Below, one piece after another: positions 13,290 through 64,000 of a stretch of DNA of 64,000 nucleotides. A model generated the notes under the pieces. The model ran no database searches. It saw only the letters and a list, made by a program, of their open reading frames with translations, and had not been told where the DNA came from. Location of the stretch: the NCBI GenBank assembly GCA_964035545.1, contig OZ037765.1:15374795-15438794 (forward strand), given 5' to 3'. Position 1 is the first letter of the stretch, and each line of letters starts with the position of its first letter. A program made the translations under genes and the position numbers. Source of the stretch: Bugula neritina. Its lineage: Eukaryota; Animalia; Bryozoa.

Positions 13290-13445
13290 CCACAACAAAC
13301 CGAAATTTATGGCATACTGAGATATGTTGCAAACTAGTAAAATCTACTGCAACATACCAAAAAAGACCTCAACTGTGCAAAATAATGAAATATACTGCAA
13401 AAATACTGAAATATACTGCAACAATTTAAAATTTACTGTATGATA
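13290..13445. repeat. Degenerate ~155-bp landmark block inside satellite A (first of 11 copies)
   Basis: CCACAACAAACCGAAATTTATGGCATACTGAGATATGTTGCAAACTAGTAAAATCTAC...AAAAAAGACCTCAACTGTGCAAAATAATG...ACAATTTAAAATTTACTGTATGAT recurs near 13290, 16506, 20872, 23590, 26208, 28386, 32335, 35624, 38342, 42291 and 43878. These are the ORFs ending VEVFFGMLQ in the track. Confidence 0.93.
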
Positions 13446-37030: not shown

Positions 37031-40000
37031 CTGCAACATACTGAAATACACTGTGACATAATGAAATACACTGCAACATACTGCAACATACTGCAACATA
37101 CTGAAAGACACTGTAACCTACTGAAATACACTGCAACACACTACAACATACTGAAATACACTGTAACATTATGAATTACACTGCAACACATTGAAATATA
37201 CTGCAACATACCGAAATATATGGTAAACAACTGATATATACTGCAAAAATACTGAAATATACTGTAACATACTGAAAGAAACTGCAACATACTGAAATAC
37301 ACTGTAACATACTGAAATACACTGTAACATACTGAAATACACTGCAACATACTACAACATATTGAAATACACTGCAACACCTTGAAATGTACCGCAACCT
37401 ACTGAAATATGCTGTAGCACACTGAAATACGCTGCAACTCACTAAAATATAAAGTAATATAGAGAAATGTACTGTAAAATACTGAAATATACTGTAACAT
37501 ACTGAAATATACTGCAACATACTGCAACATACTGAAATACACTGTAACATACTGAAATACACTGCAACATACTGAAAAACTTTGAAATACACTGGAACAT
37601 ATTGAAATACCTTACAACACATTGAAATATACTGCAACACACTGAAACATACAGTAACATACTGAAATATACTGTGACACATTGAGATATACTGCAACAT
37701 AGTTAAATATAATGCAAGATACTGCAACATACTGAAATACACTGTGACATACTGAAATACACTGCAACATACTGCAACATACTGTAACATACTGAAATAC
37801 ACTGCAACACATTGAAATAAACCGCAACATACCTAAGTATACGGTAATATACTGAAATATAATGTAACACATTGAAAAACATTGCAACATACTGAAACAT
37901 GCTGTAGCACACTGAAATACACTGCAACATACTGAAATATAATGCAAGATACTGCAACATGTAGAAATGCACTGTGACATACTGAGACACACTGCAACAT
38001 ACTGCAACATACTGCAACATACTGAAAGACACTGTAATATATTGAAATACACTGCAACACATTGAACTATACTGCAACACATTGAAATATACTGCAACCT
38101 ACTGAAACATGCTGTAGCATACTGAAATACACTGCAACACATTGAAGTATACTATAATATACAGAAATGTACTGTAACATACTGAAACATACGTCAACAT
38201 ACTGAAATGTACTGCAACATGCTGAACTATACTGCAACATACTGAAATACACTGTAATATACTGAATTAAACTGCAACATACTGAAATAAGCTGTAGCAT
38301 ACTGAAATACATTGCAGCACACTGAAGCGTACTGTAATATACCACAACAAACCGAAAATTATGGCATACTGAGATATGTTGCAAACTAGTAAAATCTACT
38401 GCAACATACCAAAGAAGACCTCAACTGTGCAAAATAATGAAATATACTGCAAAAATACTGAAATATACTGCAACAATTTAAAATTTACTGTATGATACTG
38501 AAATATACTGAAACACACTGAAACATGCTGCAAGATACTGCAACATACTGAAATACACTGTAACATACTGAAATACACTGCAACATACTGCAAAATACTG
38601 CAACATACTGAATTACACTGTAACATATTGAAATACACTGCAATACATTGAAATCTACTGCAACACACTGAAACATACTGCAACATACTAAAATATACTG
38701 CAACATATCGAACTATATTGTAATATACGAACATGTACTGTAACATACTGAAACATACTGAAACATGCTGAAATTTACTTCAACATTCTGAAATGTACTG
38801 CAACATACTGCAACATACCGAAATACACTGTAACATTCCCAAATAGACTTCAACACATTGAAACAAACTGCAACATACCTAAATATACGGTAATATACTG
38901 AAATATACTGTAACACATTGAAAAACACTGCAAGATACTGAAATATGCTGTAGCACAATGAAATGCACTACAACATACTGAAATACACTGTAACATTATG
39001 AATTACACTGCAACACATTGAAATATACTGCAACATACCGAAATATATAGTAAACAACTGAAATATACTGCAAAAATACTGAAATATACTGTAACATACT
39101 GAAAGAAACTGCAACATACTGAAATATACTGTAACACATTGAAAAAAACTGCAACATACTGAAATATACTGTAACGCACTGAAATATACTTGAAAGAACT
39201 GAAATACACTGTAACATATTGAAATACACTGTAACATACTGAAATATACTGCAGCACACTGCAACATACTGAAATACACTGTAACATACTGAAATACACT
39301 GCAACATACTACAACATATTGAAATACACTGCAACACACTGAAATACACTGCAACTCACTGAAATATGGTGTAATATACAGAAATGTACTGTAGAATGCT
39401 GAAATATACTGTAACATACTGAAATATACTGCAACATACTGCAACATACTGAAATACACTGTAACATACTGAAATACACTGCAACATACTGAAATACTTT
39501 GAAATACACTGGAACATATTGAAATACCTTACAACACATTGAAATATACTGCAACACACTGAAACATACAGCAACATACTGAAATATACTGCGACACATT
39601 AAGATATACTGCAACATAGTTAAATATAATGCAAGATACTGCAACATACTGAAATACACTGTGACATACTGAAATACACTGCAACATACTGCAACATACT
39701 GCAACATACTGAAAGACACTGTAACCTACTGAAATACACTGCAACACACTACAACATACTGAAATACACTGTAACATTATGAATTACACTGCAACACATT
39801 GAAATATACTGCAACATACCGAAATATATGGTAAACAACTGATATATACTGCAAAAATACTGAAATATACTGTAACATACTGAAAGAAACTGCAACATAC
39901 TGAAATACACTGTAACATACTGAAATACACTGTAACATACTGAAATACACTGCAACATACTACAACATATTGAAATACACTGCAACACCTTGAAATGTAC

Positions 40001-43000
40001 CGCAACCTACTGAAATATGCTGTAGCACACTGAAATACGCTGCAACTCACTAAAATATAAAGTAATATAGAGAAATGTACTGTAAAATACTGAAATATAC
40101 TGTAACATACTGAAATATACTGCAACATACTGCAACATACTGAAATACACTGTAACATACGGAAATACACTGCAACATACTGAAAAACTTTGAAATACAC
40201 TGGAACATATTGAAATACCTTACAACACATTGAAATATACTGCAACACACTGAAACATACAGTAACATACTGAAATATACTGCGACACATTGAGATATAC
40301 TGCAACATGGTTAAATATAATGCAAGATACTGCAACATACTGAAATACACTGCAACATACTGCAACATACTGTAACATACTGAAATACACTGCAACACAT
40401 TGAAATAAACCGCAACATACCTAAGTATACGGTAATATACTGAAATATAATGTAACACATTGAAAAACATTGCAACATACTGAAACATGCTGTAGCACAC
40501 TGAAATACACTGCAACATACTGAAATATAATGCAAGATACTGCAACATGTAGAAATGCACTGTGACATACTGAGACACACTGCAACATACTGCAACATAC
40601 TGCAACATACTGAAAGACACTGTAATATATTGAAATACACTGCAACACATTGAACTATACTGCAACACATTGAAATATACTGCAACCTACTGAAACATGC
40701 TGTAGCATACTGAAATACACTGCAACACATTGAAGTATACTATAATATACAGAAATGTACTGTAACATACTGAAATATACTGCAACATACTGCAACGTAC
40801 TGAAATACACTGTAACATACTGAAATACACTGCAACATACTGAAATACTTTGAAATACACTGGAACATATTGAAATACCTTACAACACATTGAAATATAC
40901 TGCAACACACTGAAACATACAGCAACATACTGAAATATACTGCGACACATTAAGATATACTGCAACATAGTTAAATATAATGCAAGATACTGCAACATAC
41001 TGAAATACACTGTGACATACTGAAATACACTGCAACATACTGCAACATACTGCAACATACTGAAAGACACTGTAACCTACTGAAATACACTGCAACACAC
41101 TACAACATACTGAAATACACTGTAACATTATGAATTACACTGCAACACATTGAAATATACTGCAACATACCGAAATATATGGTAAACAACTGATATATAC
41201 TGCAAAAATACTGAAATATACTGTAACATACTGAAAGAAACTGCAACATACTGAAATACACTGTAACATACTGAAATACACTGTAACATACTGAAATACA
41301 CTGCAACATACTACAACATATTGAAATACACTGCAACACCTTGAAATGTACCGCAACCTACTGAAATATGCTGTAGCACACTGAAATACGCTGCAACTCA
41401 CTAAAATATAAAGTAATATAGAGAAATGTACTGTAAAATACTGAAATATACTGTAACATACTGAAATATACTGCAACATACTGCAACATACTGCAACATA
41501 CTGAAATACACTGTAACATACGGAAATACACTGCAACATACTGAAAAACTTTGAAATACACTGGAACATATTGAAATACCTTACAACACATTGAAATATA
41601 CTGCAACACACTGAAACATACAGTAACATACTGAAATATACTGCGACACATTGAGATATACTGCAACATGGTTAAATATAATGCAAGATACTGCAACATA
41701 CTGAAATACACTGCAACATACTGCAACATACTGTAACATACTGAAATACACTGCAACACATTGAAATAAACCGCAACATACCTAAGTATACGGTAATATA
41801 CTGAAATATAATGTAACACATTGAAAAACATTGCAACATACTGAAACATGCTGTAGCACACTGAAATACACTGCAACATACTGAAATATAATGCAAGATA
41901 CTGCAACATGTAGAAATGCACTGTGACATACTGAGACACACTGCAACATACTGCAACATACTGCAACATACTGAAAGACACTGTAATATATTGAAATACA
42001 CTGCAACACATTGAACTATACTGCAACACATTGAAATATACTGCAACCTACTTAAACATGCTGTAGCATACTGAAATACACTGCAACACATTGAAGTATA
42101 CTATAATATACAGAAATGTACTGTAACATACTGAAACATACGTCAACATACTGAAATGTACTGCAACATGCTGAACTATACTGCAACATACTGAAATACA
42201 CTGTAATATACTGAATTAAACTGCAACATACTGAAATAAGCTGTAGCATACTGAAATACATTGCAGCACACTGAAGCGTACTGTAATATACCACAACAAA
42301 CCGAAATTTATGGCATACTGAGATATGCTGCAAACTAGTAAAATCTACTGCAACATACCAAAAAAGACCTCAACTGTGCAAAATAATGAAATATACTGCA
42401 AAAATACTGAAATATACTGCAACAATTTAAAATTTACTGTATGATACTGAAATATACTGAAACACACTGAAACATGCTGCAAGATACTGCAACATACTGA
42501 AATACACTGTAACATACTGAAATACACTGCAACATACTGCAAAATACTGCAACATACTGAATTACACTGTAACATATTGAAATACACTGCAATACATTGA
42601 AATCTACTGCAACACACTGAAACATACTGCAACATACTAAAATATACTGCAACATATCGAACTATATTGTAATATACGAACATGTACTGTAACATACTGA
42701 AACATACTGAAACATGCTGAAATATACTTCAACATTCTGAAATGTACTGCAACATACTGCAACATACCGAAATACACTGTAACATTCCCAAATACACTTC
42801 AACACATTGAAACAAACTGCAACATACCTAAATATACGGTAATATACTGAAATATACTGTAACACATTGAAAAACACTGCAAGATACTGAAATATGCTGT
42901 AGCACAATGAAATCCACTACAACATACTGAAATACACTGTAACATTATGAATTACACTGCAACACATTGAAATATACTGCAACATACCGAAATATATAGT

Positions 43001-43355
43001 AAACAACTGAAATATACTGCAAAAATACTGAAATATACTGTAACATACTGAAAGAAACTGCAACATACTGAAATATACTGTAACACATTGAAAAAAACTG
43101 CAACATACTTAAATATACTGTAACGCACTGAAATTTACTTGAAAGAAGTGAAATACACTGTAACATATTGAAATACACTGTAACATACTGAAATATACTG
43201 CAGCACACTGCAACATACTGAAATACACTGTAACATACTGAAATACACTGCAACATACTACAACATATTGAAATACACTGCAACACATTGAAATATACTG
43301 CAACACACTGAAACATACGGCAACATATTGAAATATACTGCAACACATTGAAATA
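37031..43355. repeat. ~6.3-kb near-identical duplicate of ~27075-33399 (offset 9956) within satellite A
   Basis: A constant +9956 offset holds for 27220/37176, 28440/38396, 29828/39784, 31179/41135, 32389/42345 and 32989/42945. The copies diverge at about 33400/43356. Confidence 0.88.
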
Positions 43356-45234
43356 AACCGCAACATACCTAAGTATACGGTAATATACTGAAATATAATG
43401 TAACACATTGAAAAACATTGCAACATACTGAAACATGCTGTAGCACACTGAAATACACTGCAACATACTGAAATATAATGCAAGATACTGCAACATGTAG
43501 AAATGCACTGTGACATACTGAGACACACTGCAACATACTGCAACATACTGCAACATACTGAAAGACACTGTAATATATTGAAATACACTGCAACACATTG
43601 AACTATACTGCAACACATTGAAATATACTGCAACCTACTGAAACATGCTGTAGCATACTGAAATACACTGCAACACATTGAAGTATACTATAATATACAG
43701 AAATGTACTGTAACATACTGAAACATACGTCAACATACTGAAATGTACTGCAACATGCTGAACTATACTGCAACATACTGAAATACACTGTAATATACTG
43801 AATTAAACTGCAACATACTGAAATAAGCTGTAGCATACTGAAATACATTGCAGCACACTGAAGCGTACTGTAATATACCACAACAAACCGAAATTTATGG
43901 CATACTGAGATATGTTGCAAACTAGTAAAATCTACTGCAACATACCAAAAAAGACCTCAACTGTGCAAAATAATGAAATATACTGCAAAAATACTGAAAT
44001 ATACTGCAACAATTTAAAATTTACTGTATGATACTGAAATATACTGAAACACACTGAAACATGCTGCAAGATACTGCAACATACTGAAATACACTGTAAC
44101 ATACTGAAATACACTGCAACATACTGAAATACTTTGAAATACACTGGAACATATTGAAATACCTTACAACACATTGAAATATACTGCAACACACTGAAAC
44201 ATACAGCAACATACTGAAATATACTGCGACACATTAAGATATACTGCAACATAGTTAAATATAATGCAAGATACTGCAACATACTGAAATACACTGTAAC
44301 ATACTGAAATATACTGCAACATACTGAAATATACTGTAACATACTGAAATATACTGCAACATACTGAAATACACTGTAACATACTAAAATATACTGCAAC
44401 ATACTGCAACATACTGAAATACACTGTAACATACTGAAATACACTGCAACACACTACAACATACTGAAATACACTGTAACATTATGAATTACACTGCAAC
44501 ACATTGAAATATACTGCAACATACCGAAATATATAGTAAACAACTGAAATATACTGCAAAAATACTGAAATATACTGTAACATACTGAAAGAAACTGCAA
44601 CATACTGAAATACACTGTAACATACTGAAATACACTGTAACATACTGAAATACACTGCAACATACTACAACATATTGGAATACACTGCAACACATTGAAA
44701 TATACCGCAACATACTGAAATATGCTGTAGCACACTGAAATACGCTGCAACTCACTAAAATATAAAGTAATATAGATAATTGTACTATAAAATACTGAAA
44801 TATACTGTAACATACTGAAATATACTGCAACATACTGCAACATGCTGAAATACACTGTAACATACTGAAATACACTGCAACATCTCGAAGTATATTGTAA
44901 AATACGGACATGTACTGTTACATACTGAAACATACTGAAATATACTGTAACATACTGAAACATACTGCAACATACTGAAATACACTGCAACACATTAAAA
45001 TATACTGGAACACACTGAAACATACAGCAACATACTGAAATATACTGCGGCACATTGAGATATACTGCGACATACTGAAATATGCTGTAGTATGCTGAAA
45101 TACACTGCAACACACTGAAGTATACTGTAAAATACAGAAATATACTGTAACATACTGAATTATCTGTCAACATACTGAAATGTACTGCAACATGCTGAAA
45201 TACACTGTAACATACTCAATTACACTGCAACAAA

Positions 45235-48200
45235 CTGCAACATGCTGAAATACGCTTTAACATATTGAAATACGCTCCAACACATTAAAAGATACTGCAA
45301 CATACTGAAACCTACGGCAACATACTGAAATATACTGCGACGCATTGAAATATACTGCAACATACTGAAATATGCTGTAGAATACTGAAATACACTGGAA
45401 CACACTGAAGTATACTGTAATATACAGAACTGTACTGTAACATACTGAAACATATGTCAACGTTCTGAAATATACTGCAACATGCTGAACGATTCTGCAA
45501 CATACTGAAATACACTGTAATATACTGAATTAAACTGCAACATACTGCAACATACTGAAATAAGCTGTAACATATTGAAATACACTGCAACACATTGTAA
45601 TATACTGCAACATACTGAATCATACGGCAACATACTGAAATATACTGCAACACATTGAAATATACTGCAACACACCGAAATATGCTGTAGCAGACGGAAA
45701 TACATTGCAGCACACTGAAGCGTACTGATACATACTGAAGCATACTGAAAAATACTTCAACATACTGAGATGTACTGCAACGTACTGCAACATACTGAAA
45801 CACACTGTAACATACTGAAATACACTGCACCACATTGAAACAAACTGCAACATACCTAAATATACTGCAACATACCGAAATATATGGTAAACAACTGAAA
45901 TATACTGCAAAAACACTGAAATATACTGTAACATACTGAAATACACTGTAACATACTGCAACATACTGCAACATACTGAAATACACTCTAACCTACTGAA
46001 ATACACTGCAACACACTACAACATACTGAAATACACTGTAACATTATGAATTACACTGCAACACATTGAAATATACTGCAACATACCGAAATATATGGTA
46101 AACAACTGAAATATACTGCAAAAGTACTGAAATATACTGTAACATACTGAAATACACTGTAACATACTGAAATACACTGCAACATACTACAACATATTGA
46201 AATACACTGCAACACCTTGAAATATACCGCAACATACTGAAATATGCTGTAGCACACTGAAATACGCTGCAACTCACTAAAATATAAAGTAATATAGAGA
46301 ATTGTACTGTAAAATACTGAAATATACTGTAACATACTGAAATATACTGCAACATACTGCAACATACTGAAATACACTGTAACATACTGAAATACACTGC
46401 AACATACTGCAACATACTGAAATACACTGGAACATTTTGAAATGCACTACAACACATTAAAATATACTGGAACACACTGAAACATACAGCAACATACTGA
46501 AATATACTGCGACACATTGAGATATACTGCAACATACTGAAATATGCTGTAGTATGCTGAAATACACTGCAACACACTGAGGTATACTGTAAAATACAGA
46601 AATATACTGTAACATACTGAAACATCTGTCAACATACTGAAATGTACTGCAACATGCTGAAATATACTGTAACGCACTGAAATATACTTGAAAGAACTGA
46701 AATACACTGTAACATATTGAAATACACTGCAACATACTACAACATATTGAAATACACTGCAACACATTGAAATATACTGCAACACATTGAAATATACCGC
46801 AACATACTGAACTATGCTGTAGCACACTGAAATACACTGCAACTCACTGAAATATGGTGTAATATACAGAAATGTACTGTAGAATGCTGAAATATACTGT
46901 AACATACTGAAATATACTGTAACATACTGAAATATACTGCAACACACTGCAACATACTGAAATACACTGTAACATACTGAAATACACTGCAACATACTAC
47001 AACATATTGAAATACACTGTAACATACTGAAATATACTGCAACACACTGCAACATACTGAAATACACTGTACCATACTGAAATACACTGCAACACACTGA
47101 AATATGGTGTAATATACAGAAATGTACTGTAGAATGCTGAAATATACTGTAACATACTGAAATATACTGCAACATACTGCAACATTCTGAAATACACTGT
47201 AACATACTGAAATACACTGCAACATACTGAAATATACTGTAACACATTGAAAAAAACTGCAACATACTGAAATATACTGTAACGCACTGAAATATACTTG
47301 AAAGAACTGAAATATACTGTAACATACTGAAATATATTGCAACATACTGCAACATACTGAAATACACTGTAATATACTGAAATACACTGCAACATACTGA
47401 AATACTTTGAAATACACTGGAACATATTGAAATACCTTACAACACATTGAAATATACTGCAACACACTGAAACATACAGCAACATACTGAAATATACTGC
47501 GACACATTAAGATATACTGCAACATAGTTAAATATAATGCAAGATACTGCAACATACTGAAATACACTGTAACATACTGAAATATACTGCAACATACTGA
47601 AATATACTGTAACATACTGAAATATACTGCAACATACTGAAATACACTGTAACATACTGAAATATACTGCAACATACTGCAACATACTGAAATACACTGT
47701 AACATACTGAAATACACTGCAACACACTACAACATACTGAAATACACTGTAACATTATGAATTACACTGCAACACATTGAAATATACTGCAACATACCGA
47801 AATATATAGTAAACAACTGAAATATACTGCAAAAATACTGAAATATACTGTAACATACTGAAAGAAACTGCAACATACTGAAATACACTGTAACATACTG
47901 AAATACACTGTAACATACTGAAATACACTGCAACATACTACAACATATTGAAATACACTGCAACACATTGAAATATACCGCAACATACTGAAATATGCTG
48001 TAGCACACTGAAATACGCTGCAACTCACTAAAATATAAAGTAATATAGATAATTGTACTGTAAAATACTGAAATATACTGTAACATACTGAAATATACTG
48101 CAACATACTGCAACATGCTGAAATACACTGTAACATACTGAAATACACTGCAACATCTCGAAGTATATTGTAAAATACGGACATGTACTGTTACATACTG

Positions 48201-51200
48201 AAACATACTGAAATATCTTGTAACATACTGAAATATACTGCAACATACTGAAATACACTGCAACACATTAAAATATACTGGAACACACTGAAACATACAG
48301 CAACATACTGAAATATACTGCGACACATTGAGATATACTGCGACATACTGAAATATGCTGTAGTATGCTGAAATACACTGCAACACACTGAAGTATACTG
48401 TAAAATACAGAAATATACTGTAACATACTGAATTATCTGTCAACATACTGAAATGTACTGCAACATGCTGAAATACGCTTTAACATATTGAAATACGCTC
48501 CAACACATTAAAAGATACTGCAACATACTGAAAGCTACGGCAACATACTGAAATATACTGCGACGCATTGAAATATACTGCAACATACTGAAATATGCTG
48601 TAGAATACTGAAATACACTGCAACACACTGAAGTATACTGTAATATACAGAACTGTACTGTAACATACTGAAACATACGTCAACGTACTGAAATATACTG
48701 CAACATGCTGAACGATTCTGCAACATACTGAAATACACTGTAATATACTGAATTAAACTGCAACATACTGCAACATACTGAAATAAGCTGTAACATATTG
48801 AAATACACTGCAACACATTGTAATATACTGCAACATACTGAATCATACGGCAACATACTGAAATATACTGCAACACATTGAAATATACTGCAACACACCG
48901 AAATATGCTGTAGCAGACGGAAATACATTGCAGCACACTGAAGCGTACTGATACATACTGAAGCATACTGGAAAATACTTCAACATACTGAGATGTACTG
49001 CAACGTACTGCAACATACTGAAACACACTGTAACATACTGAAATACACTGCACCACATTGAAACAAACTGCAACATACCTAAATATACTGCAACATACCG
49101 AAATATATGGTAAACAACTGAAATATACTGCAAAAATACTGAAATATACTGTAACATACTGAAAGAAACTGCAACATACTGAAATACACTGTAACATACT
49201 GAAATACACTGTAACATACTGCAACATACTACAACATACTGAAATACACTGTAACATTATGAATTACACTGCAACATATTGAAATATTCTGCAACATACC
49301 GAAATATATGGTAAACAACTAAAATATACTGCAAAAATACTGAAATATACTGTAACATACTGAAATACACTGTAACATACTGAAATATACTGCAGCACAC
49401 TGCAACATACTGAAATACACTGTAACATACTGAAATACACTGCAACATACTACAACATATTGAAATACACTGCAACACATTGAAATATACTGCAACACAC
49501 TGAAACATACGGCAACACATTGAAATATACTGCAACACATTGAAATATACCGCAACATACTGAACTATGCTGTAGCACACTGAAATACACTGCAACTCAC
49601 TGAAATATGGTGTAATATACAGAAATGTACTGTAGAATGCTGAAATATACTGTAACATACTGAAATATACTGCAACATACTGCAACAGTCTGAAATACAC
49701 TGTAACATACTGAAATACACTGCAACATACTGAAATATACTGTAACACATTGAAAAAAACTGCAACATACTGAAATATACTGTAACGCACTGAAATATAC
49801 TTGAAAGAACTGAAATATACTGTAACATACTGAAATATATTGCAACATACTGCAACACACTGAAATACACTGTAACATACTGAAATACACTGCAACATAC
49901 TGAAATACTTTGAAATACACTGGAACATATTGAAATACCTTACAACACATTGAAATATACTGCAACACACTGAAACATACAGCAACATACTGAAATATAC
50001 TGCGACACATTAAGATATACTGCAACATAGTTAAATATAATGCAAGATACTGCAACATACTGAAATACACTGTAACATACTGAAATATACTGCAACATAC
50101 TGAAATATACTGTAACATACTGAAATATACTGCAACATACTGAAATACACTGTAACATACTGAAATATACTGCAACATACTGCAACATACTGAAATACAC
50201 TGTAACATACTGAAATACACTGCAACACACTACAACATACTGAAATACACTGTAACATTATGAATTACACTGCAACACATTGAAATATACTGCAACATAC
50301 CGAAATATATAGTAAACAACTGAAATATACTGCAAAAATACTGAAATATACTGTAACATACTGAAAGAAACTGCAACATACTGAAATACACTGTAACATA
50401 CTGAAATACACTGTAACATACTGAAATACACTGCAACATACTACAACATATTGAAATACACTGCAACACATTGAAATATACCGCAACATACTGAAATATG
50501 CTGTAGCACACTGAAATACGCTGCAACTCACTAAAATATAAAGTAATATAGATAATTGTACTGTAAAATACTGAAATATACTGTAACATACTGAAATATA
50601 CTGCAACATACTGCAACATGCTGAAATACACTGTAACATACTGAAATACACTGCAACATCTCGAAGTATATTGTAAAATACGGACATGTACTGTTACATA
50701 CTGAAACATACTGAAATATACTGTAACATACTGAAATATACTGCAACATACTGAAATACACTGCAACACATTAAAATATACTGGAACACACTGAAACATA
50801 CAGCAACATACTGAAATATACTGCGACACATTGAGATATACTGCGACATACTGAAATATGCTGTAGTATGCTGAAATACACTGCAACACACTGAAGTATA
50901 CTGTAAAATACAGAAATATACTGTAACATACTGAATTATCTGTCAACATACTGAAATGTACTGCAACATGCTGAAATACGCTTTAACATATTGAAATACG
51001 CTCCAACACATTAAAAGATACTGCAACATACTGAAACCTACGGCAACATACTGAAATATACTGCGACGCATTGAAATATACTGCAACATACTGAAATATG
51101 CTGTAGAATACTGAAATACACTGGAACACACTGAAGTATACTGTAATATACAGAACTGTACTGTAACATACTGAAACATATGTCAACGTTCTGAAATATA

Positions 51201-54200
51201 CTGCAACATGCTGAACGATTCTGCAACATACTGAAATACACTGTAATATACTGAATTAAACTGCAACATACTGCAACATACTGAAATAAGCTGTAACATA
51301 TTGAAATACACTGCAACACATTGTAATATACTGCAACATACTGAATCATACGGCAACATACTGAAATATACTGCAACACATTGAAATATACTGCAACACA
51401 CCGAAATATGCTGTAGCAGACGGAAATACATTGCAGCACACTGAAGCGTACTGATACATACTGAAGCATACTGAAAAATACTTCAACATACTGAGATGTA
51501 CTGCAACGTACTGCAACATACTGAAACACACTGTAACATACTGAAATACACTGCACCACATTGAAACAAACTGCAACATACCTAAATATACTGCAACATA
51601 CCGAAATATATGGTAAACAACTGAAATATACTGCAAAAACACTGAAATATACTGTAACATACTGAAATACACTGTAACATACTGCAACATACTGCAACAT
51701 ACTGAAATACACTCTAACCTACTGAAATACACTGCAACACACTACAACATACTGAAATACACTGTAACATTATGAATTACACTGCAACACATTGAAATAT
51801 ACTGCAACATACCGAAATATATGGTAAACAACTGAAATATACTGCAAAAGTACTGAAATATACTGTAACATACTGAAATACACTGTAACATACTGAAATA
51901 CACTGCAACATACTACAACATATTGAAATACACTGCAACACCTTGAAATATACCGCAACATACTGAAATATGCTGTAGCACACTGAAATACGCTGCAACT
52001 CACTAAAATATAAAGTAATATAGAGAATTGTACTGTAAAATACTGAAATATACTGTAACATACTGAAATATACTGCAACATACTGCAACATACTGAAATA
52101 CACTGTAACATACTGAAATACACTGCAACATACTGCAACATACTGAAATACACTGGAACATTTTGAAATGCACTACAACACATTAAAATATACTGGAACA
52201 CACTGAAACATACAGCAACATACTGAAATATACTGCGACACATTGAGATATACTGCAACATACTGAAATATGCTGTAGTATGCTGAAATACACTGCAACA
52301 CACTGAGGTATACTGTAAAATACAGAAATATACTGTAACATACTGAAACATCTGTCAACATACTGAAATGTACTGCAACATGCTGAAATATACTGTAACG
52401 CACTGAAATATACTTGAAAGAACTGAAATACACTGTAACATATTGAAATACACTGCAACATACTACAACATATTGAAATACACTGCAACACATTGAAATA
52501 TACTGCAACACATTGAAATATACCGCAACATACTGAACTATGCTGTAGCACACTGAAATACACTGCAACTCACTGAAATATGGTGTAATATACAGAAATG
52601 TACTGTAGAATGCTGAAATATACTGTAACATACTGAAATATACTGTAACATACTGAAATATACTGCAACACACTGCAACATACTGAAATACACTGTAACA
52701 TACTGAAATACACTGCAACATACTACAACATATTGAAATACACTGTAACATACTGAAATATACTGCAACACACTGCAACATACTGAAATACACTGTACCA
52801 TACTGAAATACACTGCAACACACTGAAATATGGTGTAATATACAGAAATGTACTGTAGAATGCTGAAATATACTGTAACATACTGAAATATACTGCAACA
52901 TACTGCAACATTCTGAAATACACTGTAACATACTGAAATACACTGCAACATACTGAAATATACTGTAACACATTGAAAAAAACTGCAACATACTGAAATA
53001 TACTGTAACGCACTGAAATATACTTGAAAGAACTGAAATATACTGTAACATACTGAAATATATTGCAACATACTGCAACATACTGAAATACACTGTAATA
53101 TACTGAAATACACTGCAACATACTGAAATACTTTGAAATACACTGGAACATATTGAAATACCTTACAACACATTGAAATATACTGCAACACACTGAAACA
53201 TACAGCAACATACTGAAATATACTGCGACACATTAAGATATACTGCAACATAGTTAAATATAATGCAAGATACTGCAACATACTGAAATACACTGTAACA
53301 TACTGAAATATACTGCAACATACTGAAATATACTGTAACATACTGAAATATACTGCAACATACTGAAATACACTGTAACATACTGAAATATACTGCAACA
53401 TACTGCAACATACTGAAATACACTGTAACATACTGAAATACACTGCAACACACTACAACATACTGAAATACACTGTAACATTATGAATTACACTGCAACA
53501 CATTGAAATATACTGCAACATACCGAAATATATAGTAAACAACTGAAATATACTGCAAAAATACTGAAATATACTGTAACATACTGAAAGAAACTGCAAC
53601 ATACTGAAATACACTGTAACATACTGAAATACACTGTAACATACTGAAATACACTGCAACATACTACAACATATTGAAATACACTGCAACACATTGAAAT
53701 ATACCGCAACATACTGAAATATGCTGTAGCACACTGAAATACGCTGCAACTCACTAAAATATAAAGTAATATAGATAATTGTACTGTAAAATACTGAAAT
53801 ATACTGTAACATACTGAAATATACTGCAACATACTGCAACATGCTGAAATACACTGTAACATACTGAAATACACTGCAACATCTCGAAGTATATTGTAAA
53901 ATACGGACATGTACTGTTACATACTGAAACATACTGAAATATCTTGTAACATACTGAAATATACTGCAACATACTGAAATACACTGCAACACATTAAAAT
54001 ATACTGGAACACACTGAAACATACAGCAACATACTGAAATATACTGCGACACATTGAGATATACTGCGACATACTGAAATATGCTGTAGTATGCTGAAAT
54101 ACACTGCAACACACTGAAGTATACTGTAAAATACAGAAATATACTGTAACATACTGAATTATCTGTCAACATACTGAAATGTACTGCAACATGCTGAAAT

Positions 54201-56760
54201 ACGCTTTAACATATTGAAATACGCTCCAACACATTAAAAGATACTGCAACATACTGAAAGCTACGGCAACATACTGAAATATACTGCGACGCATTGAAAT
54301 ATACTGCAACATACTGAAATATGCTGTAGAATACTGAAATACACTGCAACACACTGAAGTATACTGTAATATACAGAACTGTACTGTAACATACTGAAAC
54401 ATACGTCAACGTACTGAAATATACTGCAACATGCTGAACGATTCTGCAACATACTGAAATACACTGTAATATACTGAATTAAACTGCAACATACTGCAAC
54501 ATACTGAAATAAGCTGTAACATATTGAAATACACTGCAACACATTGTAATATACTGCAACATACTGAATCATACGGCAACATACTGAAATATACTGCAAC
54601 ACATTGAAATATACTGCAACACACCGAAATATGCTGTAGCAGACGGAAATACATTGCAGCACACTGAAGCGTACTGATACATACTGAAGCATACTGGAAA
54701 ATACTTCAACATACTGAGATGTACTGCAACGTACTGCAACATACTGAAACACACTGTAACATACTGAAATACACTGCACCACATTGAAACAAACTGCAAC
54801 ATACCTAAATATACTGCAACATACCGAAATATATGGTAAACAACTGAAATATACTGCAAAAATACTGAAATATACTGTAACATACTGAAAGAAACTGCAA
54901 CATACTGAAATACACTGTAACATACTGAAATACACTGTAACATACTGCAACATACTACAACATACTGAAATACACTGTAACATTATGAATTACACTGCAA
55001 CATATTGAAATATTCTGCAACATACCGAAATATATGGTAAACAACTAAAATATACTGCAAAAATACTGAAATATACTGTAACATACTGAAATACACTGTA
55101 ACATACTGAAATATACTGCAGCACACTGCAACATACTGAAATACACTGTAACATACTGAAATACACTGCAACATACTACAACATATTGAAATACACTGCA
55201 ACACATTGAAATATACTGCAACACACTGAAACATACGGCAACACATTGAAATATACTGCAACACATTGAAATATACCGCAACATACTGAACTATGCTGTA
55301 GCACACTGAAATACACTGCAACTCACTGAAATATGGTGTAATATACAGAAATGTACTGTAGAATGCTGAAATATACTGTAACATACTGAAATATACTGCA
55401 ACATACTGCAACAGTCTGAAATACACTGTAACATACTGAAATACACTGCAACATACTGAAATATACTGTAACACATTGAAAAAAACTGCAACATACTGAA
55501 ATATACTGTAACGCACTGAAATATACTTGAAAGAACTGAAATATACTGTAACATACTGAAATATATTGCAACATACTGCAACACACTGAAATACACTGTA
55601 ACATACTGAAATACACTGCAACATACTGAAATACTTTGAAATACACTGGAACATATTGAAATACCTTACAACACATTGAAATATACTGCAACACACTGAA
55701 ACATACAGCAACATACTGAAATATACTGCGACACATTAAGATATACTGCAACATAGTTAAATATAATGCAAGATACTGCAACATACTGAAATACACTGTA
55801 ACATACTGAAATATACTGCAACATACTGAAATATACTGTAACATACTGAAATATACTGCAACATACTGAAATACACTGTAACATACTGAAATATACTGCA
55901 ACATACTGCAACATACTGAAATACACTGTAACATACTGAAATACACTGCAACACACTACAACATACTGAAATACACTGTAACATTATGAATTACACTGCA
56001 ACACATTGAAATATACTGCAACATACCGAAATATATAGTAAACAACTGAAATATACTGCAAAAATACTGAAATATACTGTAACATACTGAAAGAAACTGC
56101 AACATACTGAAATACACTGTAACATACTGAAATACACTGTAACATACTGAAATACACTGCAACATACTACAACATATTGAAATACACTGCAACACATTGA
56201 AATATACCGCAACATACTGAAATATGCTGTAGCACACTGAAATACGCTGCAACTCACTAAAATATAAAGTAATATAGATAATTGTACTGTAAAATACTGA
56301 AATATACTGTAACATACTGAAATATACTGCAACATACTGCAACATGCTGAAATACACTGTAACATACTGAAATACACTGCAACATCTCGAAGTATATTGT
56401 AAAATACGGACATGTACTGTTACATACTGAAACATACTGAAATATACTGTAACATACTGAAATATACTGCAACATACTGAAATACACTGCAACACATTAA
56501 AATATACTGGAACACACTGAAACATACAGCAACATACTGAAATATACTGCGACACATTGAGATATACTGCGACATACTGAAATATGCTGTAGTATGCTGA
56601 AATACACTGCAACACACTGAAGTATACTGTAAAATACAGAAATATACTGTAACATACTGAATTATCTGTCAACATACTGAAATGTACTGCAACATGCTGA
56701 AATACGCTTTAACATATTGAAATACGCTCCAACACATTAAAAGATACTGCAACATACTGA
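45235..56760. repeat. Two tandem copies of a 5726-bp higher-order unit of satellite A (sub-units 3223 + 2503 bp)
   Basis: A constant +5726 offset holds for 45257/50983, 46044/51770, 46447/52173, 47727/53453, 49257/54983 and 50230/55956. An internal sub-period runs 47727>50230 (2503) and 50230>53453 (3223). Confidence 0.9.
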
Positions 56761-58537
56761 AAGCTACGGCAACATACTGAAATATACTGCGACGCATTGA
56801 AATATACTGCAACATACTGAAATATGCTGTAGAATACTGAAATACACTGCAACACACTGAAGTATACTGTAATATACAGAACTGTACTGTAACATACTGA
56901 AACATACGTCAACGTACTGAAATATACTGCAACATGCTGAACGATTCTGCAACATACTGAAATACACTGTAATATACTGAATTAAACTGCAACATACTGC
57001 AACATACTGAAATAAGCTGTAACATATTGAAATACACTGCAACACATTGTAATATACTGCAACATACTGAATCATACGGCAACATACTGAAATATACTGC
57101 AACACATTGAAATATACTGCAACACACCGAAATATGCTGTAGCAGACGGAAATACATTGCAGCACACTGAAGCGTACTGATACATACTGAAGCATACTGG
57201 AAAATACTTCAACATACTGAGATGTACTGCAACGTACTGCAACATACTGAAACACACTGTAACATACTGAAATACACTGCACCACATTGAAACAAACTGC
57301 AACATACCTAAATATACTGCAACATACCGAAATATATGGTAAACAACTGAAATATACTGCAAAAATACTGAAATATACTGTAACATACTGAAAGAAACTG
57401 CAACATACTGAAATACACTGTAACATACTGAAATACACTGTAACATACTGCAACATACTGCAACATACTGAAATACACTGTAACATTATGAATTACACTG
57501 CAACACATTGAAATATTCTGCAACATACCGAAATATATGGTAAACAACTAAAATATACTGCAAAAATACTGAAATATACTGTAACATACTGAAATACACT
57601 GTAACATACTGAAATACACTGCAACATACTACAACATATTGAAATACACTGCAACACCTTGAAATATACCGCAACATACTGAAATATGCTGTAGCACACT
57701 TAAATACGCTGCAACTCACTAAAATATAAAGTAATATAGAGAATTGTACTGTAAAATACTGAAATATACTGTAACATACTGAAATATACTGCAACATACT
57801 GCAACATACTGAAATACACTGTAACATACTGAAATACACTGCAACATACTGCAACATACTGAAATACACTGGAACATTTTGAAATGCACTACAACACATT
57901 AAAATATACTGGAACACACTGAAACATACAGCAACATACTGAAATATACTGCGACACATTGAGATATACTGCAACATACTGAAATATGCTGTAGTATGCT
58001 GAAATACACTGCAACACACTGAGGTATACTGTAAAATACAGAAATATACTGTAACATACTGAAACATCTGTCAACATACTGAAATGTACTGCAACATGCT
58101 GAAATATATTGCAACATACTGAAATACACTGTAACATACTCAATTACACTGCAACAAACTGCAACATACTGAAATACGCTTTAACATATTGAAATACGCT
58201 CCAACACATTAAAAGATACTGCAACATACTGAAACATACGGCAACATACTGAAATATACTGCAACGCATTGAAATATACTGCAACATACTGAAATATGCT
58301 GTAGAATACTGAAATACACTGCAACACACTGAAGTATACTGTAATATACAGAACTGTACTGTAAAATACTGTAACATACGGCAACATACTGAAACACACC
58401 GCAACATACTGCAACATAGTGCAACATACTGAATTACACTGTAACATATTCAAATACACTGCAATACATATACATTTACTGCAACACACTGAAACATACT
58501 GCAACATACTGAGATATACTGCAACATATCGAAGTAT

Positions 58538-58636
58538 CACAGTTGGTTTAAGGTCATTACTTTCCAGATTCAGGCACTGCTTTATGTTATATATAAACGG
58601 TTTCCAGGAGATAGCTCGAACAGTTTTTGTCTCACA
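58538..58636 (+). repeat. Left terminal inverted repeat (bipartite)
   Basis: A 20-bp outer block, a 20-bp spacer (58558-58577), an inner 46-bp block TGCTTTATGTTATATATAAACGGTTTCCAGGAGATAGCTCGAACAG (58578-58623), then N8 and TCACA. Confidence 0.93.
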
Positions 58637-59433
58637 TTAATACATTTTACATGAAAAGATAGCTCTTGCATTCCTCTTTCATATACTTTTTTAATTTTTC
58701 AATAAAAAATTTTCTGAGAAAGTTGTTGCATAATAAGTAAAATTTTACACCCTCCATGTTCCACTGCTGTAGCACAGGGGATCCATTTTACAAAGTTTAA
58801 AAGTTAAACTTGACATTCCTTGATATGTTTTCTCTAATATACTTTCTTTGTTTTTTGAAATTCTGTTTATGCTCTTCACAATTTGGTAAAAACATACACC
58901 ATTTTTCAAGTTTCACTGCAATTTTCTAAATTCTTCATATGGTGGTTCTAGCTACGCTCCTGTGACTAATTATAACATTCCTAGTACGTTTGCCGCTCTG
59001 CGCTATCACAATAACATATAGTACCCTCTCGCACAAATTGGCAATCTATTGGATTTCTGCCAATATAATGTTCCCTGTTTTACTTTAGCACTCAGCTGAA
59101 TCATCTCACTAGTTACAATAATATATTGAAAATGCCTCAGCACAACACAATTCTTTGTTTGTTTGGCAGAGTTAATTTCAGCTAAATCACTTCACTTTAC
59201 AGTCTTGTCAGTAAAGGTCTGTCTATAGTGCAGCAGGTGCACTTTCAGTTTCTCTAATTCACATATAATTATTTTAAGTACATTGTATTCTATAAGATCA
59301 ATTTAAAGTTTAGTCCAGTGTTCAGTATCTAATTATTATGCATGTATGTTGTCTTACTGTTGAACAAAAGTTAAAAAAACTTTACAATTATAGCCATATT
59401 TATTATACATGCGTAGGATTTGCATAAGTTGAC

Positions 59434-59440
59434 AAAAAAA
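59434..59440 (-). terminator. T7 run, possible Pol III terminator for the tRNA-like unit
   Basis: A7 on the + strand lies 6 nt downstream of the 3' end of the tRNA-like sequence on the minus strand. Confidence 0.3.
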
Positions 59441-59446
59441 TTGCAA

Positions 59447-59513
59447 CAAAACAGGGTTGAACCATGACCACCCAACTCGTCACTGACGCCTCTAACCTCT
59501 GGACCACGCTTTT
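59447..59513 (-). pseudogene. Degenerate tRNA-like sequence or tRNA-derived SINE-head-like Pol III promoter
   Basis: The minus strand reads AAAAGCG TGGTCCAGAGG TTAGAGGCGTCAGTGACGAGTTGGGTGGTCAT GGTTCAACCC TGTTTTG. It has an A-box-like motif (59506-59496) and a B-box-like motif (59463-59454) at intron-less tRNA spacing. AAAAGCG/TGTTTTG can form 6 of 7 acceptor pairs. The D, anticodon and T stems are imperfect. Confidence 0.45.
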
Positions 59514-59550
59514 ATCTTTTATCTATATGAGTAACTATCATTACATAAAT

Positions 59551-59565
59551 ATTTCGCGCGCAAAT
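59551..59565 (+). promoter_or_regulatory. E2F-consensus-containing quasi-palindrome ATTTCGCGCGCAAAT
   Basis: It contains TTTCGCGC, a match to TTTSSCGC, and is the only (CG)3 run in an AT-rich element. Function is not demonstrated. Confidence 0.2.
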
Positions 59566-60470
59566 GGGTTATAATTATTAGGCTGTCAATTCATGTTGAT
59601 AGCAGTGAACTGTTGCAATAGTCTCGGGTTACTAGCAAAGCTAATGGTTTTGAACAAATAACCCAAAAGTTTAAAAATAAGTAGCTTGCATATTACTAGC
59701 TACAAAAACGGGTCTGAAATAGACTGGTAAAGCAAGCTCTTATTGTAGAGTTTGCAGATGTGCTCTAAAATAAAACTTAAACTGTATGCTATTACATAAG
59801 TATTTGTATGCGAGAGATAAATGGACATTACTGAGTTTCTGGAAAACAACATACTTGAAGTTAACTTTGACAATGGTGTGTTATTTTCATCATAGCTAGC
59901 CTATAGCATAAATCTCTAATCATATGAATCTTTATGAAGCCCACAGCTCATGTAAGGGTGGCAATGTAATTTGAAACGAACAATTATGTTGCTGCATTGT
60001 GTCTAAGGTATATTAGAGAGCAGAATTTGGTTTTACTAGCCTACCCCAACGGCATTCTACAATGCAGCTTATATGCTGGCAGTTGTAATAAGTACTGCCA
60101 ATAGCAAGGTTACTATCACTGCTAGCTCTGTGCAGTATGTAACCTCTTGAATAATTGCGCCAATTTTAAACTCTTGGAAGTTGGCCAAGTTATCATATCG
60201 CAACCAGCCACTGGAGACAAAGCATCAGAGCTATTCATATAATATTATACTGATGCACTTGGTAGCAAAGTGGCTAATCTAATATAGTTCATAGTTCAAC
60301 ACCCTTTACTTTGGGAATACAGCCTCTTTTTTTGGGTTTACCTAACAAAGCATGAAAATATCTAAACTAATATTCTGATAATTTAGAGGTACATTTTGAA
60401 AACTAGGTTAATTGCACTTGTTTGCACAACAATAATAAAATAGATATTATGCAGTATAATAAAAACACAC

Positions 60471-60516
60471 ATAATACTATATAATATATTATAATGATAA
60501 TAATATAATATTATAA
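60471..60516. repeat. AT-rich low-complexity tract (TAA/TATA)
   Basis: ATAATACTATATAATATATTATAATGATAATAATATAATATTATAA. Confidence 0.6.
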
Positions 60517-60976
60517 GTACCATTACTGCATTTTATAACTCACATGGTTGCCAAAAAAATGTATCACAAATGCTGTAATTATAAATCGAAAATAGAACTA
60601 GCTAGGCAGCAGGTTAGAATAGAGTAAATTTTTAAAACATGAAATCATGATTTGACTATTGTTTTATTTAGGCCAACCAACCTAGGAATACAATATTGGG
60701 TTTTAGCTGACAGTTTATAACAATTAGCTTTTGAGCCAGCAGCACTGGCACTTGTGAAGTATAGGCAAAGTTAGTGAAGCGAGACTAACGAGCATTCAAA
60801 TACAAGGCATATTGAGACGCAATAACAAGTCAGGAGCGTATAAATTGAAAAGAATGTGGAAGGGGGACTATGTTTTTCAACAAGCTATAACTTAAACATG
60901 AATTGGCTTTTGAAAAAAATAAAAAAGTATATTGGAGAACATAAGTTTCTTTATCTTTTCATATTTTTTTTGTTCC

Positions 60977-61083
60977 TGTGACATTCAACCTGTTCGAGCT
61001 ATCAGTGGAACATTGTTCATATAGAACATAAAGCACCTGGCAAAGAGCCAGAAAATGAAAAGTATGACCTTAAACCAACTGTG
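60977..61083 (-). repeat. Right terminal inverted repeat (bipartite)
   Basis: On the minus strand: an identical 20-bp outer block, a 28-bp spacer (61036-61063), and an inner block TGCTTTATGTTCTATATGAACAATGTTCCACTGATAGCTCGAACAG (61035-60990). The inner block has 36/46 ungapped identities to the left one, including perfect 11- and 14-bp runs. It is followed by N8 and TCACA. Confidence 0.93.
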
Positions 61084-64000
61084 TTTTAGGCATTTTTTAG
61101 CACATTTAGGCACTTTAAGCACATTTAGGCACTTTTAGGCACTTTTAGTCACTTTTTACCACACTTAGGCACTATTAGCACATTTAGGCACATTTAGGCA
61201 CTTTTAGGCACTTTCCAGCACATTTGGGCACTTTTAGCACATTTAGGCACTTTTAGGCACATTTTAGCACATTTGGGCACTTTTCAGCACATTTAGGCAC
61301 TTTTAGCACATTTGGGCACATTTAGGCACTGTTTAGCACTTTTAGGCACTTTCCAGCACATTTGGGCACTTTTAGCACATTTAGGCACTTTAAGGCACTT
61401 TTTAGAAGATTTGGGCACTTTTAGGCACTTTCCAGCACATTTGGGCACTTTTAGCACATTTAGGCACTTTTAGCACATTTAGGCACATTTAGGCACTTTT
61501 AAGCACTTTCCAGCACATTTGGGCACTTTTAGCACATTTAGGCACATTTAGGCACTTTTTAGCACATTTAGGCACTTTTAGGCACTTTCCAGCACATTTG
61601 GGCAGTTTTAGCACATTTAGGCACTTTTTAGCACATTTAGGCACTTTTTAGCCTATTTAGGCATTTTTTAGCACATTTAGGCACTTTTTAGCACATTTTG
61701 GCACTTTCAGCACACTTAGGCACATTTCGGCACTTTTTAGCACATTTGGGCACTTTCCAGCACATTTGGGCACTTTTAGCACATTTGGGCACATTTAGGC
61801 ACTTTTTAGCACATTTAGGCACTTTTCAGCACATTTAGGCGCTTTTAGGCACTTTCCAGCACATTTGGGCACTTTTAGCACATTTAGGCACATTTAGGCA
61901 CTTTTTAGCACATTTAGGCACTTTTAGGCACTTTCCAGCACATTTGGGCACTTTTAGCACACTTAGGCACTTTTTAGCACATTTAGGCCCTTTTTAGCCT
62001 ATTTAGGCATTTTTTAGCACATTTAGGCACTTTTTAGCACATTTTGGCACTTTCAGCACACCTAGGCACATTTAGGCACTTTTTAGCACATTTGGGCACT
62101 TTCCAGCACATTTGGGCACTTTTAGCACATTTGGCACATTTAGGCACTTTTTAGCACATTTGGGCACTTTTCAGCACATTTAGGCGCTTTTAGCACATTT
62201 AGGCACATTTAGGCACTGTTTAGTACATTTAGGCACTTTTAGGGACTTTCCAGCACATTTGGGAGCTTTTAGCACATTTAGGCACTTTTAGCACATTTAG
62301 GCACATTTAGGCACTTTTAGGCACTTTCCAGCACATTTGGGCACTTTTAGGGACTTTCCAGCACATTTGGGAGCTTTTAGCACATTTAGGCACTTTTAGC
62401 ACATTTAGGCACATTTAGGCACTTTTAGGCACTTTCCAGCACATTTGGGCACTTTTAGCACATTTAGGCACTTTTAGGCACTTTGTACCACATTTGGGGA
62501 TTTTTCAGCACATTTAGGCACTTTTAGCACATTTGGGCACATTTAGGCACTGTTTAGCACTTTTAGGCACTTTTAGGCACTTTCCAGCACATTTGGGCAC
62601 TTTTAGCACATTTAGGCACATTTAGGCACTTTTTAGCACATTTAGGCACTTTTAGGCACTTTCCAGCACATTTGGGCACTTTTAGCACACTTAGGCACTT
62701 TTTAGCACATTTAGGCACTTTTTAGCCTATTTAGGCATTTTTTAGCACATTTAGGCACTTTTTAGCACATTTTGGCACTTTCAGCACATTTGGGCACTTT
62801 TAGCACATTTGGGCACATTTCAGCACATTTAGGCGCTTTTAGCACATTTAGGCACTTTTCAGCACATTTAGGCACTTTTAGGCACTTTCCAGCACATTTG
62901 GCCACTTTTAGCACATTTAGGCACTTTTAGCACATTTAGGCACATTTAGGCACTTTTAGGCACTTTCCAGCACATTTGGGCACTTTTAGCACATTTAGGC
63001 ACATTTAGGCACTTTTCAGCACATTTAGGCACTTTTAGCACATTTAGGCACTTATTACCACATTTAGGCACTTTTTAGCACATTTAGGCACTTTTAGCAT
63101 ATTTAGGCACATTTAGGCACATTTAGGCACTTTTAGCACATTTAGGCACATTTAGGCACTTTTAGGCACTTTCCAGCACATTTAGGCACTTTTAGCACAT
63201 TTAGGCACATTTAGGCACTTTTCAGCACATTTAGGCACTTTTAGCACATTTAGGCACATTCAGGCACTTTTTAGCACATTTAGGCACTTTTTAGCACATT
63301 TAGGCACTTTTAGCATATTTAGGCACATTTAGGCACTTTTTAGCACATTTAGGCTCTTTTTCAGCCTATTTGGGCATTTTTTAGCATATTGAGGCACTTT
63401 TTAGCACATTTCGGCACTTTCAGCACATTTAGGCACATTTAGGCACTTTTTAGCACATTTGGGCACTTTCCAGCACATTTGGGCACTTTTAGCACATTTG
63501 GGCACATTTAGGCACTTTTTAGCACATTTAGGCACTTTTCAGCACATTTAGGCACTTTTAGCACATTGAGGCGCATTTAGGCACTGTTTAGCACATTTAG
63601 GCACTTTTAGGCACTTTCCAGCACATTTGGGCACTTTTAGCACATTTAGGTACTTTTAGCACATTTAGGCACTTTTAGCACATTTAGTCACTTTTAGGCA
63701 CTTTCCAGCACATTTAGGCACTTTTAGCACATTTAGGCACATTTAGGCATTTTTTAGCACATTTAGGCCTTTTTAAGCACCTTTAGGCACTTTTAGTACA
63801 TTTAGGCACTTTTTAGCACATTTAGGCATTTTTAGTACATTTAGGCATATTAAGACTTTTTTAGGCACTTTTAGGCACTTTTTAGCACATTTAGGCACTT
63901 TTGGCCCATTTAGGCACTTTTAGGCATTTTTTAGCACATTTAGGCACTTTTAGCACATTTAGGCACTTTTAGGCACTTTTTAGCACACTTAGGCACTATT
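61084..64000. repeat. Satellite B: 9-11-bp monomer array (TTAGGCACTT / TTAGCACAT / TTGGGCACTT / TTCCAGCACAT); open at the right window edge
   Basis: A GCAC core recurs every 9-11 nt, separated by T-tracts. It starts at the first base after the right TIR and runs to the window end. Confidence 0.98.

Follow-up and report, generated by a model that had tools for sequence, protein, structure and literature searches.

In the 64,000-nucleotide stretch of Bugula neritina DNA analysed here (the window; C1:15374795-15438794 on contig OZ037765.1), an array of one satellite (satellite A) gives way to another (satellite B), and the exact junction is occupied by a transposon copy, elt1. We found that elt1 and a second copy of its family, elt2, bracket an island of satellite B inside satellite A, that each copy has satellite A at one end and satellite B at the other, and that neither copy is flanked by a target-site duplication (TSD). 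We give roughly even credence to the explanation that these junctions arose by end-precise flank exchange through aberrant or alternative transposition, possibly in several steps. Flank exchange at element ends is a known kind of transposon-driven restructuring, which would here have acted in satellite DNA and calls for no new mechanism. The origin of satellite islands and array borders is poorly understood because such regions have seldom been assembled. In the present case both borders of one island are marked by an active DNA transposon, through TSD-less junctions cut precisely at its ends, and the locus would be a natural case of satellite DNA being restructured by transposon ends. The features concerned are as follows, in window coordinates except for the last.

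1..58537, + strand: satellite A array, 10-bp period, 20-mer unit TACTGCAACATACTGAAATA, kilobase-scale higher-order repeats
58538..61083, + strand: elt1, 2546 bp, 5'-CACAGTTGG...CCAACTGTG-3', flanks AT (left) and TT (right), no TSD
58538..58564, + strand: left terminal inverted repeat (TIR) of elt1
61057..61083, - strand: right TIR of elt1
61084..64000, + strand: left edge of the satellite B island, 10-mer TTTAGGCACA, up to the contig end
C1:15458877-15462748, + strand: elt2, 3872 bp, second copy of the family of elt1

Two transposon copies bracket a satellite B island

Satellite A extends to the first base of elt1 and satellite B adjoins its last base, in agreement with the sequence-only reading, which had placed a TIR element without a TSD at the exact junction of two satellite arrays. 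The left flank reads ...CATATCGAAGTAT and the right flank TTTTAGGCATTTTTTAGCAC. The 20-mer repeat of satellite A was traced over 1-58528 and the 10-mer repeat of satellite B over 61085-63997. All six satellite A paralogs of the left flank continue with ATTGTAA(T/A)ATACG..., and the satellite B homologue of the right flank, located near 63925, has ...TTTAGGCAC in front of it; both comparisons bear out the earlier statements that intact variants of the left flank continue with ATTGTAA and that the right flank has a homologue with different preceding sequence. A simple insertion would show the same host sequence on both sides together with the TSD of the family, and elt1 has neither. The junction between its right end and satellite B was found only once in the 216-Mb assembly searched.

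The element starts with CACAGTTGGTTTAAGGTCAT at 58538 and ends with the reverse complement of this motif at 61083. Its TIRs are 27 nt long and 89% complementary, with subterminal similarity between the two ends reaching to about 125 nt. A second conserved block (TGCTTTATGTT...GATAGCTCGAACAG) lies about 9 nt nearer the tip at the left end than at the right end, where about 9 extra bases separate it from the tip. No open reading frame of at least 60 aa was found wholly within 58538-61083, and the element showed no tRNA and no Rfam match. By its TIRs, the copy number and TSDs of its family and its lack of a gene, elt1 is a non-autonomous cut-and-paste TIR transposon.

On the left, satellite A continues for at least 10 kb past the window start. 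Its final 200 bp or so before elt1 have only about 90% identity to their best paralogs and thus represent a diverged array edge. Within window positions 20000-57000, satellite A has a higher-order periodicity of about 3 kb (at 44-57 kb) or about 10 kb (earlier), with near-identical blocks. On the right, satellite B, which is organised in 49/69-bp higher-order units of TTTAGGCACA, reaches window base 64000, directly before a 200-N scaffold gap (C1:15438795-15438994; window coordinates 64001-64200), and the contig carrying the elt1 junction thus includes just 2.9 kb of it. Past the gap, satellite B resumes in the same orientation and runs for 19.9 kb, stopping exactly at the left tip of elt2, whose right tip is directly followed by satellite A, again in the same orientation. 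The resulting order is satellite A, elt1, satellite B (at least 23 kb, including the gap), elt2, satellite A, with all parts on the + strand. The sequence-only reading had called for a reciprocal product running from satellite B through the element into satellite A; a mirror-image junction of this kind does exist about 23 kb to the right, at elt2, though it need not be the reciprocal of a single exchange.

The flanks of elt2 are CA on the left and AA on the right, without a TSD, and all four termini of elt1 and elt2 are intact to the last base. The two copies are about 95% identical and differ by a 1.3-kb internal insert, and they belong to different lineages. The right flank of elt2 starts at the target that the family favours in satellite A, TGA^AA, which suggests that elt2 began as an ordinary satellite A insertion. 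Within elt2, we found a partial internal duplication of canonical positions 459-972 and a nested 755-bp CACAGGA-ended element (window coordinates ~84922-85677, L033) with CACAGGATAGTTA... TIRs and a 2-bp TSD, AT; a 94% identical copy of this nested element occurs at L039:5241-5999 (~C1:14681241-14681999). Slightly to the right of elt2, two further family copies, elt3 and elt4, lie inside satellite A with AA duplications. A 1.3-kb foldback-like insert in elt4 (L035; window coordinates 106045-107339) has 400-bp inverted arms that are 98.5% identical and an apparent 8-bp duplication, ATAATTAT.

The core of the satellite B island is 99.7-100% duplicated, and these identical blocks explain the scaffold gap. 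The 2.9-kb edge beside elt1 has 91-97% identity to its best paralogs, which are located across the gap in the same island, and the edge beside elt2 is diverged as well; diverged edges around a homogenised core are the pattern of a real, old array. An assembly artefact, in which contigs were misthreaded through the 2.5-kb repeat or a contig end is chimeric, would find room in the gap just 2.9 kb past elt1 and in a second gap 1.2 kb from another TSD-less copy, on C3 (below), and misthreading through a repeat does yield reciprocal joins. We nevertheless consider it very unlikely: elt1 and elt2 differ by 5% and by the 1.3-kb internal insert and are not confusable, elt1 is not detectably chimeric, and the crosswise TSDs that swapped true copies should display are missing. 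Moreover, the diverged edge variant of satellite B that follows elt1 has its closest relatives on the far side of the gap in this island and not at other loci, no other locus repeats its junction with elt1, and elt2 sits 19.9 kb inside its contig.

Target-site duplications of the family and borders without the element

Full-length copies of the family number at least 40, at 96-98% identity, and the genome contains about 234 left ends; all begin with CACAGTT(G/A)G. The family is young, and since many copies carry 0-1 private substitutions it is active or was so very recently. We determined the flanks of 29 fetched copies, of two neighbours in satellite A and of about 21 pairs from a pattern search, the last read by eye and not by script. 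The results revealed a perfect 2-bp TSD in 50 copies, a 3-bp duplication in 2 and none in 3. The 2-bp sequences were varied (TA, AA, TT, CA, CC, CT, TC, GA, AC, AT and TG); the two 3-bp duplications, ATC and AAC (L025 and C2:6763215-6765782), both end in C. Normal TSD-flanked insertions within satellite A include elt3, elt4, L006, L011, L014 and L015, and every satellite-A-embedded copy seen has a TSD. Inside a 2-kb patch of same-orientation satellite B at C2:18.90 Mb, the copy at C2:18902561-18905093 is flanked by a normal TA duplication. This copy, one at C3:12.33 Mb (C3:12326839) and a 5.4-kb relative at C2:7190792-7196231 were read through rows of the pattern search.

Copies with identical flanks recur about 20.9 kb apart in satellite A (C1:14737903, 14871833 and 14892753) and at 6.0-6.3 kb spacing elsewhere (C2:18691149, 18697463 and 18703477); the element has been amplified passively within larger repeat units. 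Near a contig start, left ends at C2:7457 and C2:13100 face each other, 5.6 kb apart; they adjoin CCCCAAA-type repeats, and their flanks form no TSD.

The three copies without a TSD (elt1, elt2 and C3:17887439-17890008) all adjoin satellite B. The TSD was absent in 3/4 satellite-B-adjacent copies compared to 0/51 others (Fisher p = 1.5e-4). Because the family otherwise follows the TSD rule and the loss is confined to copies touching satellite B, the missing TSD is a scar left by flank exchange and not a family trait. The sequence-only reading had taken elt1 for a rearrangement product and not a simple insertion, a view that would have failed if copies in unique DNA also lacked TSDs; with 2-bp TSDs in 50 copies, in unique DNA, in satellite A and even in satellite B, the objection falls away and the view holds.

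The C3 copy separates two stretches of satellite B that run in opposite orientations (B+, element, B-); its flanks are CT on the left and TG on the right, and the junction is of the inversion type. A 200-N gap lies 1.2 kb away. Among the copies compared, it is the only other one that has a private 4-site signature found in elt2. In its surroundings (C3:17886259-17892287; L037/L038), 280 bp of satellite A come next, followed by a non-satellite stretch with a long open frame.

We also found borders between the two satellites at which no element is present. Three direct B-to-A boundaries, at C1:14695186 (L040), C239:4975 (L042) and C192:3405 (L043), have three different breakpoints, and on C3 the inverted satellite B array meets satellite A directly. 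At C1:14687301 (L040), a head-to-head junction of satellite B on the - strand with satellite B on the + strand (...GTGCTAAAA joined to TTTTGGCAC...) likewise contains no element and is of the fold-back inversion type. These element-free junctions show that abrupt-ended satellite B islands in satellite A are common and that satellite B is prone to rearrangement of its own. The transposon is therefore not a general maker of satellite borders, and the earlier proposal that it stitches satellite domains together and defines their boundary holds for the present island only. Excision footprints at the three bare junctions were considered and rejected, since every base is accounted for by the two satellites. 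On C239, the start of satellite A lies 4 bp away from the counterpart of the elt2 right end, within a shared variant motif (AAAAYACTACAACAYATTGAAA). Interpreting C239 as an element-free allele of the right border was rejected, as similarity between the arrays is only about 78% and copies of the motif occur at intervals of about 1.3 kb; the 4-bp match may be coincidence.

The existence of such abrupt element-free junctions gives some footing to the idea that elt1 and elt2 are ordinary insertions, by chance or targeting, on older A/B junctions, with the 2-bp TSD mutated later. The second base of the two flanking dinucleotides matches in each bracketing copy, and three satellite B paralogs read ATTTAGGCAT compared to TTTTAGGCAT in the elt1 flank. 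However, the paralog at 63925 also has TTTTAGGCAT, so that the T may be ancestral at elt1, and the elt2 flanks each match their own satellite paralogs exactly, so that no mutated TSD can be inferred there; mutation of a TSD would be expected in about 4% of copies at about 1% divergence. By our own estimate, based on a local density of 4 copies/124 kb, an element end would come to lie within 2 bp of any given boundary with a probability of about 6e-5, and this would be needed twice. A chance insertion exactly on a boundary is improbable, and here it would have occurred at both boundaries of one island; we consider this explanation highly improbable.

Origin of the exchanged flanks

Two further explanations make different predictions for the elements and their flanks. 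If the flanks were swapped by non-allelic homologous recombination, copies located in satellite A would have exchanged sequence with copies located in satellite B, by crossovers or through a long gene-conversion tract. The elements are the sole homology common to both satellites, the family copies are dense and 95-98% alike, and the bracketing copies, both satellite A flanks and satellite B share one orientation, as recombination requires; satellite B does contain a copy in the same relative orientation (C2:18902561), and two independent parent pairs would give exactly the observed absence of a TSD in any pairing. Such an event should leave a chimera whose halves have different closest relatives. 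We compared 34 of the roughly 234 family copies. The results showed that elt1 has 19 derived variants in common with the L002/L003/L004 subfamily, spanning positions 72-2253 of its 2546, and 21 private substitutions that are evenly spread; within this comparison elt2 was uninformative. Thus elt1 is not detectably chimeric, which weakens both copy-to-copy recombination and a misjoin. A crossover must have hit the roughly 14% of the element at its uninformative ends or joined two members of the same rare subfamily, and four parent copies and two exchanges would be needed, with elt1 and elt2 (~95% identical) coming from different lineages. Recombination between one copy in satellite A and one in satellite B, which the sequence-only reading had offered first, is therefore not borne out by elt1, and we regard homologous recombination in general as unlikely. 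The other mechanism it had offered, a single adjacent deletion or inversion, fails to explain why two copies bracket the island.

In a single macrotransposition, by contrast, a composite (copy, satellite B, copy) would have left a satellite B array by excision at its outer ends and entered satellite A. Two complete same-orientation copies do bracket the segment, the inner flanks would need no mutual relation, as observed, and the 4-site signature of elt2 is otherwise found only in the satellite-B-adjacent C3 copy. Satellite B islands occur within satellite A at several loci, and Ac macrotransposons of 10-28 kb are documented (PMC9910405). The outer ends, however, lack the expected TSD (AT at elt1 compared to AA at elt2) and a contiguous target. 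The two outer flanks are out of register by about 345 bp within the higher-order repeat, with the elt2 right flank mapping upstream of the elt1 insertion point; they are 88% identical and continue differently, and the ATTGTAA... continuation seen in all six paralogs of the elt1 left flank is absent from the elt2 right flank. A contiguous satellite A target was ruled out on these grounds. Integration of the composite would thus require end joining or a target deletion, and the right flank of elt2 resembles an ordinary satellite A insertion site. We think one macrotransposition quite improbable.

The inner flanks gave a similar result. The inner dinucleotides are TT (right of elt1) and CA (left of elt2), and a reversed-ends event should leave a TSD common to the inner ends and contiguous inner flanks; neither was found. 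A circle or single-target model for these flanks was rejected: the 10-bp phase fits, and the higher-order register is 521 bp out in a 1575-bp unit, with a random-like joint score. When joined, the inner flanks score 435-442 bits, compared to a mean of 445 for random in-phase joints and 523 for true neighbours, a test that the diverged edges weaken. Neither a clean macrotransposon insertion nor a single reversed-ends event is easily reconciled with this absence of TSDs and of contiguity.

We favour flank exchange by aberrant or alternative transposition because it accommodates four unrelated half-sites and intact termini, the absence of visible chimerism, the activity of the family and the strict link to satellite B. 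Linked cut-and-paste copies are known to produce deletions, inversions, composite insertions and macrotransposons (PMC9910405, PMC4270019, PMC3744419). Two old same-orientation copies of a young CACAG-ended transposon with 2-bp TSDs bracket a satellite B island inside satellite A, and each has one satellite A flank and one satellite B flank, cut at the terminal base, with its TIR tips intact. Their ends would have been used in aberrant transposition, and the DNA beside one end of each copy would have been exchanged. The exchange may have taken the form of two one-sided flanking deletions of the hybrid-element type, as known for P and Ac; of a pairing between ends of two linked copies, with later changes on top ('progressive rearrangements', PMC9910405); or of the capture, by end joining at breaks, of a copy or composite that had been excised. 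It probably took more than one step. What the data show is the structure, the TSD rule of the family, the confinement of TSD loss to copies touching satellite B and the lack of visible chimerism in elt1; cutting by a transposase and not by homologous recombination, and how many events took place in what order, are inferences.

Several results weigh against this explanation as well. However the four flanks are paired, neither a TSD nor a contiguous target results, be it in satellite A, where the outer flanks are offset, or in satellite B, where the inner ones are; no pair of ends shares a TSD that would certify alternative transposition, as it does in maize. Given the lack of a shared TSD and of contiguous flanks, at least two events, or one imprecise event, must be assumed. 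No abutting element ends (signal-joint-like) were found in the genome, and the elt1 junction, 2.9 kb from a scaffold gap, has a structure known from the assembly alone.

A bolder proposal, which we consider distinctly unlikely, is that the CACAG-ended pair, as a macrotransposon or end-captured composite, carried the block of at least 23 kb of satellite B into satellite A, and that later loss of such brackets left the bare satellite B islands at the three other loci. If true, a RAG1/Transib-like (CMCT) family would have been the vehicle seeding one satellite in another, reshaping satellite and possibly centromeric domains. The locus could allow a test of transposase-driven against recombination-driven satellite exchange.

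Comparison with known systems

As in ectopic recombination between dispersed copies, we observed TSD-less copies with unrelated flanks and matching orientation; ectopic recombination predicts chimeric elements, and none is visible in elt1. The ends of the family invite a second comparison. The CMCT clade (EnSpm/CACTA, Mirage, Chapaev, Transib and relatives) has 5'-CA...TG-3' termini and TSDs of 2-5 bp (PMC12730594), together with a DDE transposase bearing C(2)C and H(3-4)H motifs. The family of elt1 shares the end features, with CACAG...CTGTG termini and a TSD of 2, rarely 3, bp, and the nested CACAGGA-ended 755-bp element in elt2, with its 2-bp TSD, resembles the clade in the same respect. 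The copy elt1 itself has no gene, and its provisional placement in the clade is drawn from the end features only.

The closest parallels to the junctions themselves come from P and from Ac/Ds elements. Preston, Sved and Engels in 1996 reportedly described P-element hybrid element insertion and flanking deletions in Drosophila. Hybrid element insertion of P elements is also mentioned in PMC3470690. In these events, as here, the element itself survives intact; beyond one end the original flank is kept, and from the exact terminus of the other onwards new DNA takes its place, either with its orientation kept (deletion) or inverted, as in the C3 copy. For the present island two events of this kind would have to be assumed, one per side, and for the family of elt1 the likeness is an analogy only.

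In maize and rice, alternative transposition of linked Ac/Ds elements includes reversed-ends and sister-chromatid events, composite insertions and macrotransposons (PMC9910405, PMC4270019, PMC3744419, PMC3239180). Each Ac event is certified by an 8-bp TSD common to two different ends, whereas here no ends share a 2-bp TSD. The present case also differs from Ac/Ds in that two satellites, instead of genes, are concerned, that the element is of a different superfamily, and that the events are inferred from one assembly and were not observed. As in Ac/Ds, complete cut-and-paste elements are kept at the rearrangement breakpoints, the flanks are exchanged exactly at the element terminus, and two linked direct-orientation copies bracket a segment of 10-30 kb, in keeping with progressive multi-step rearrangements.

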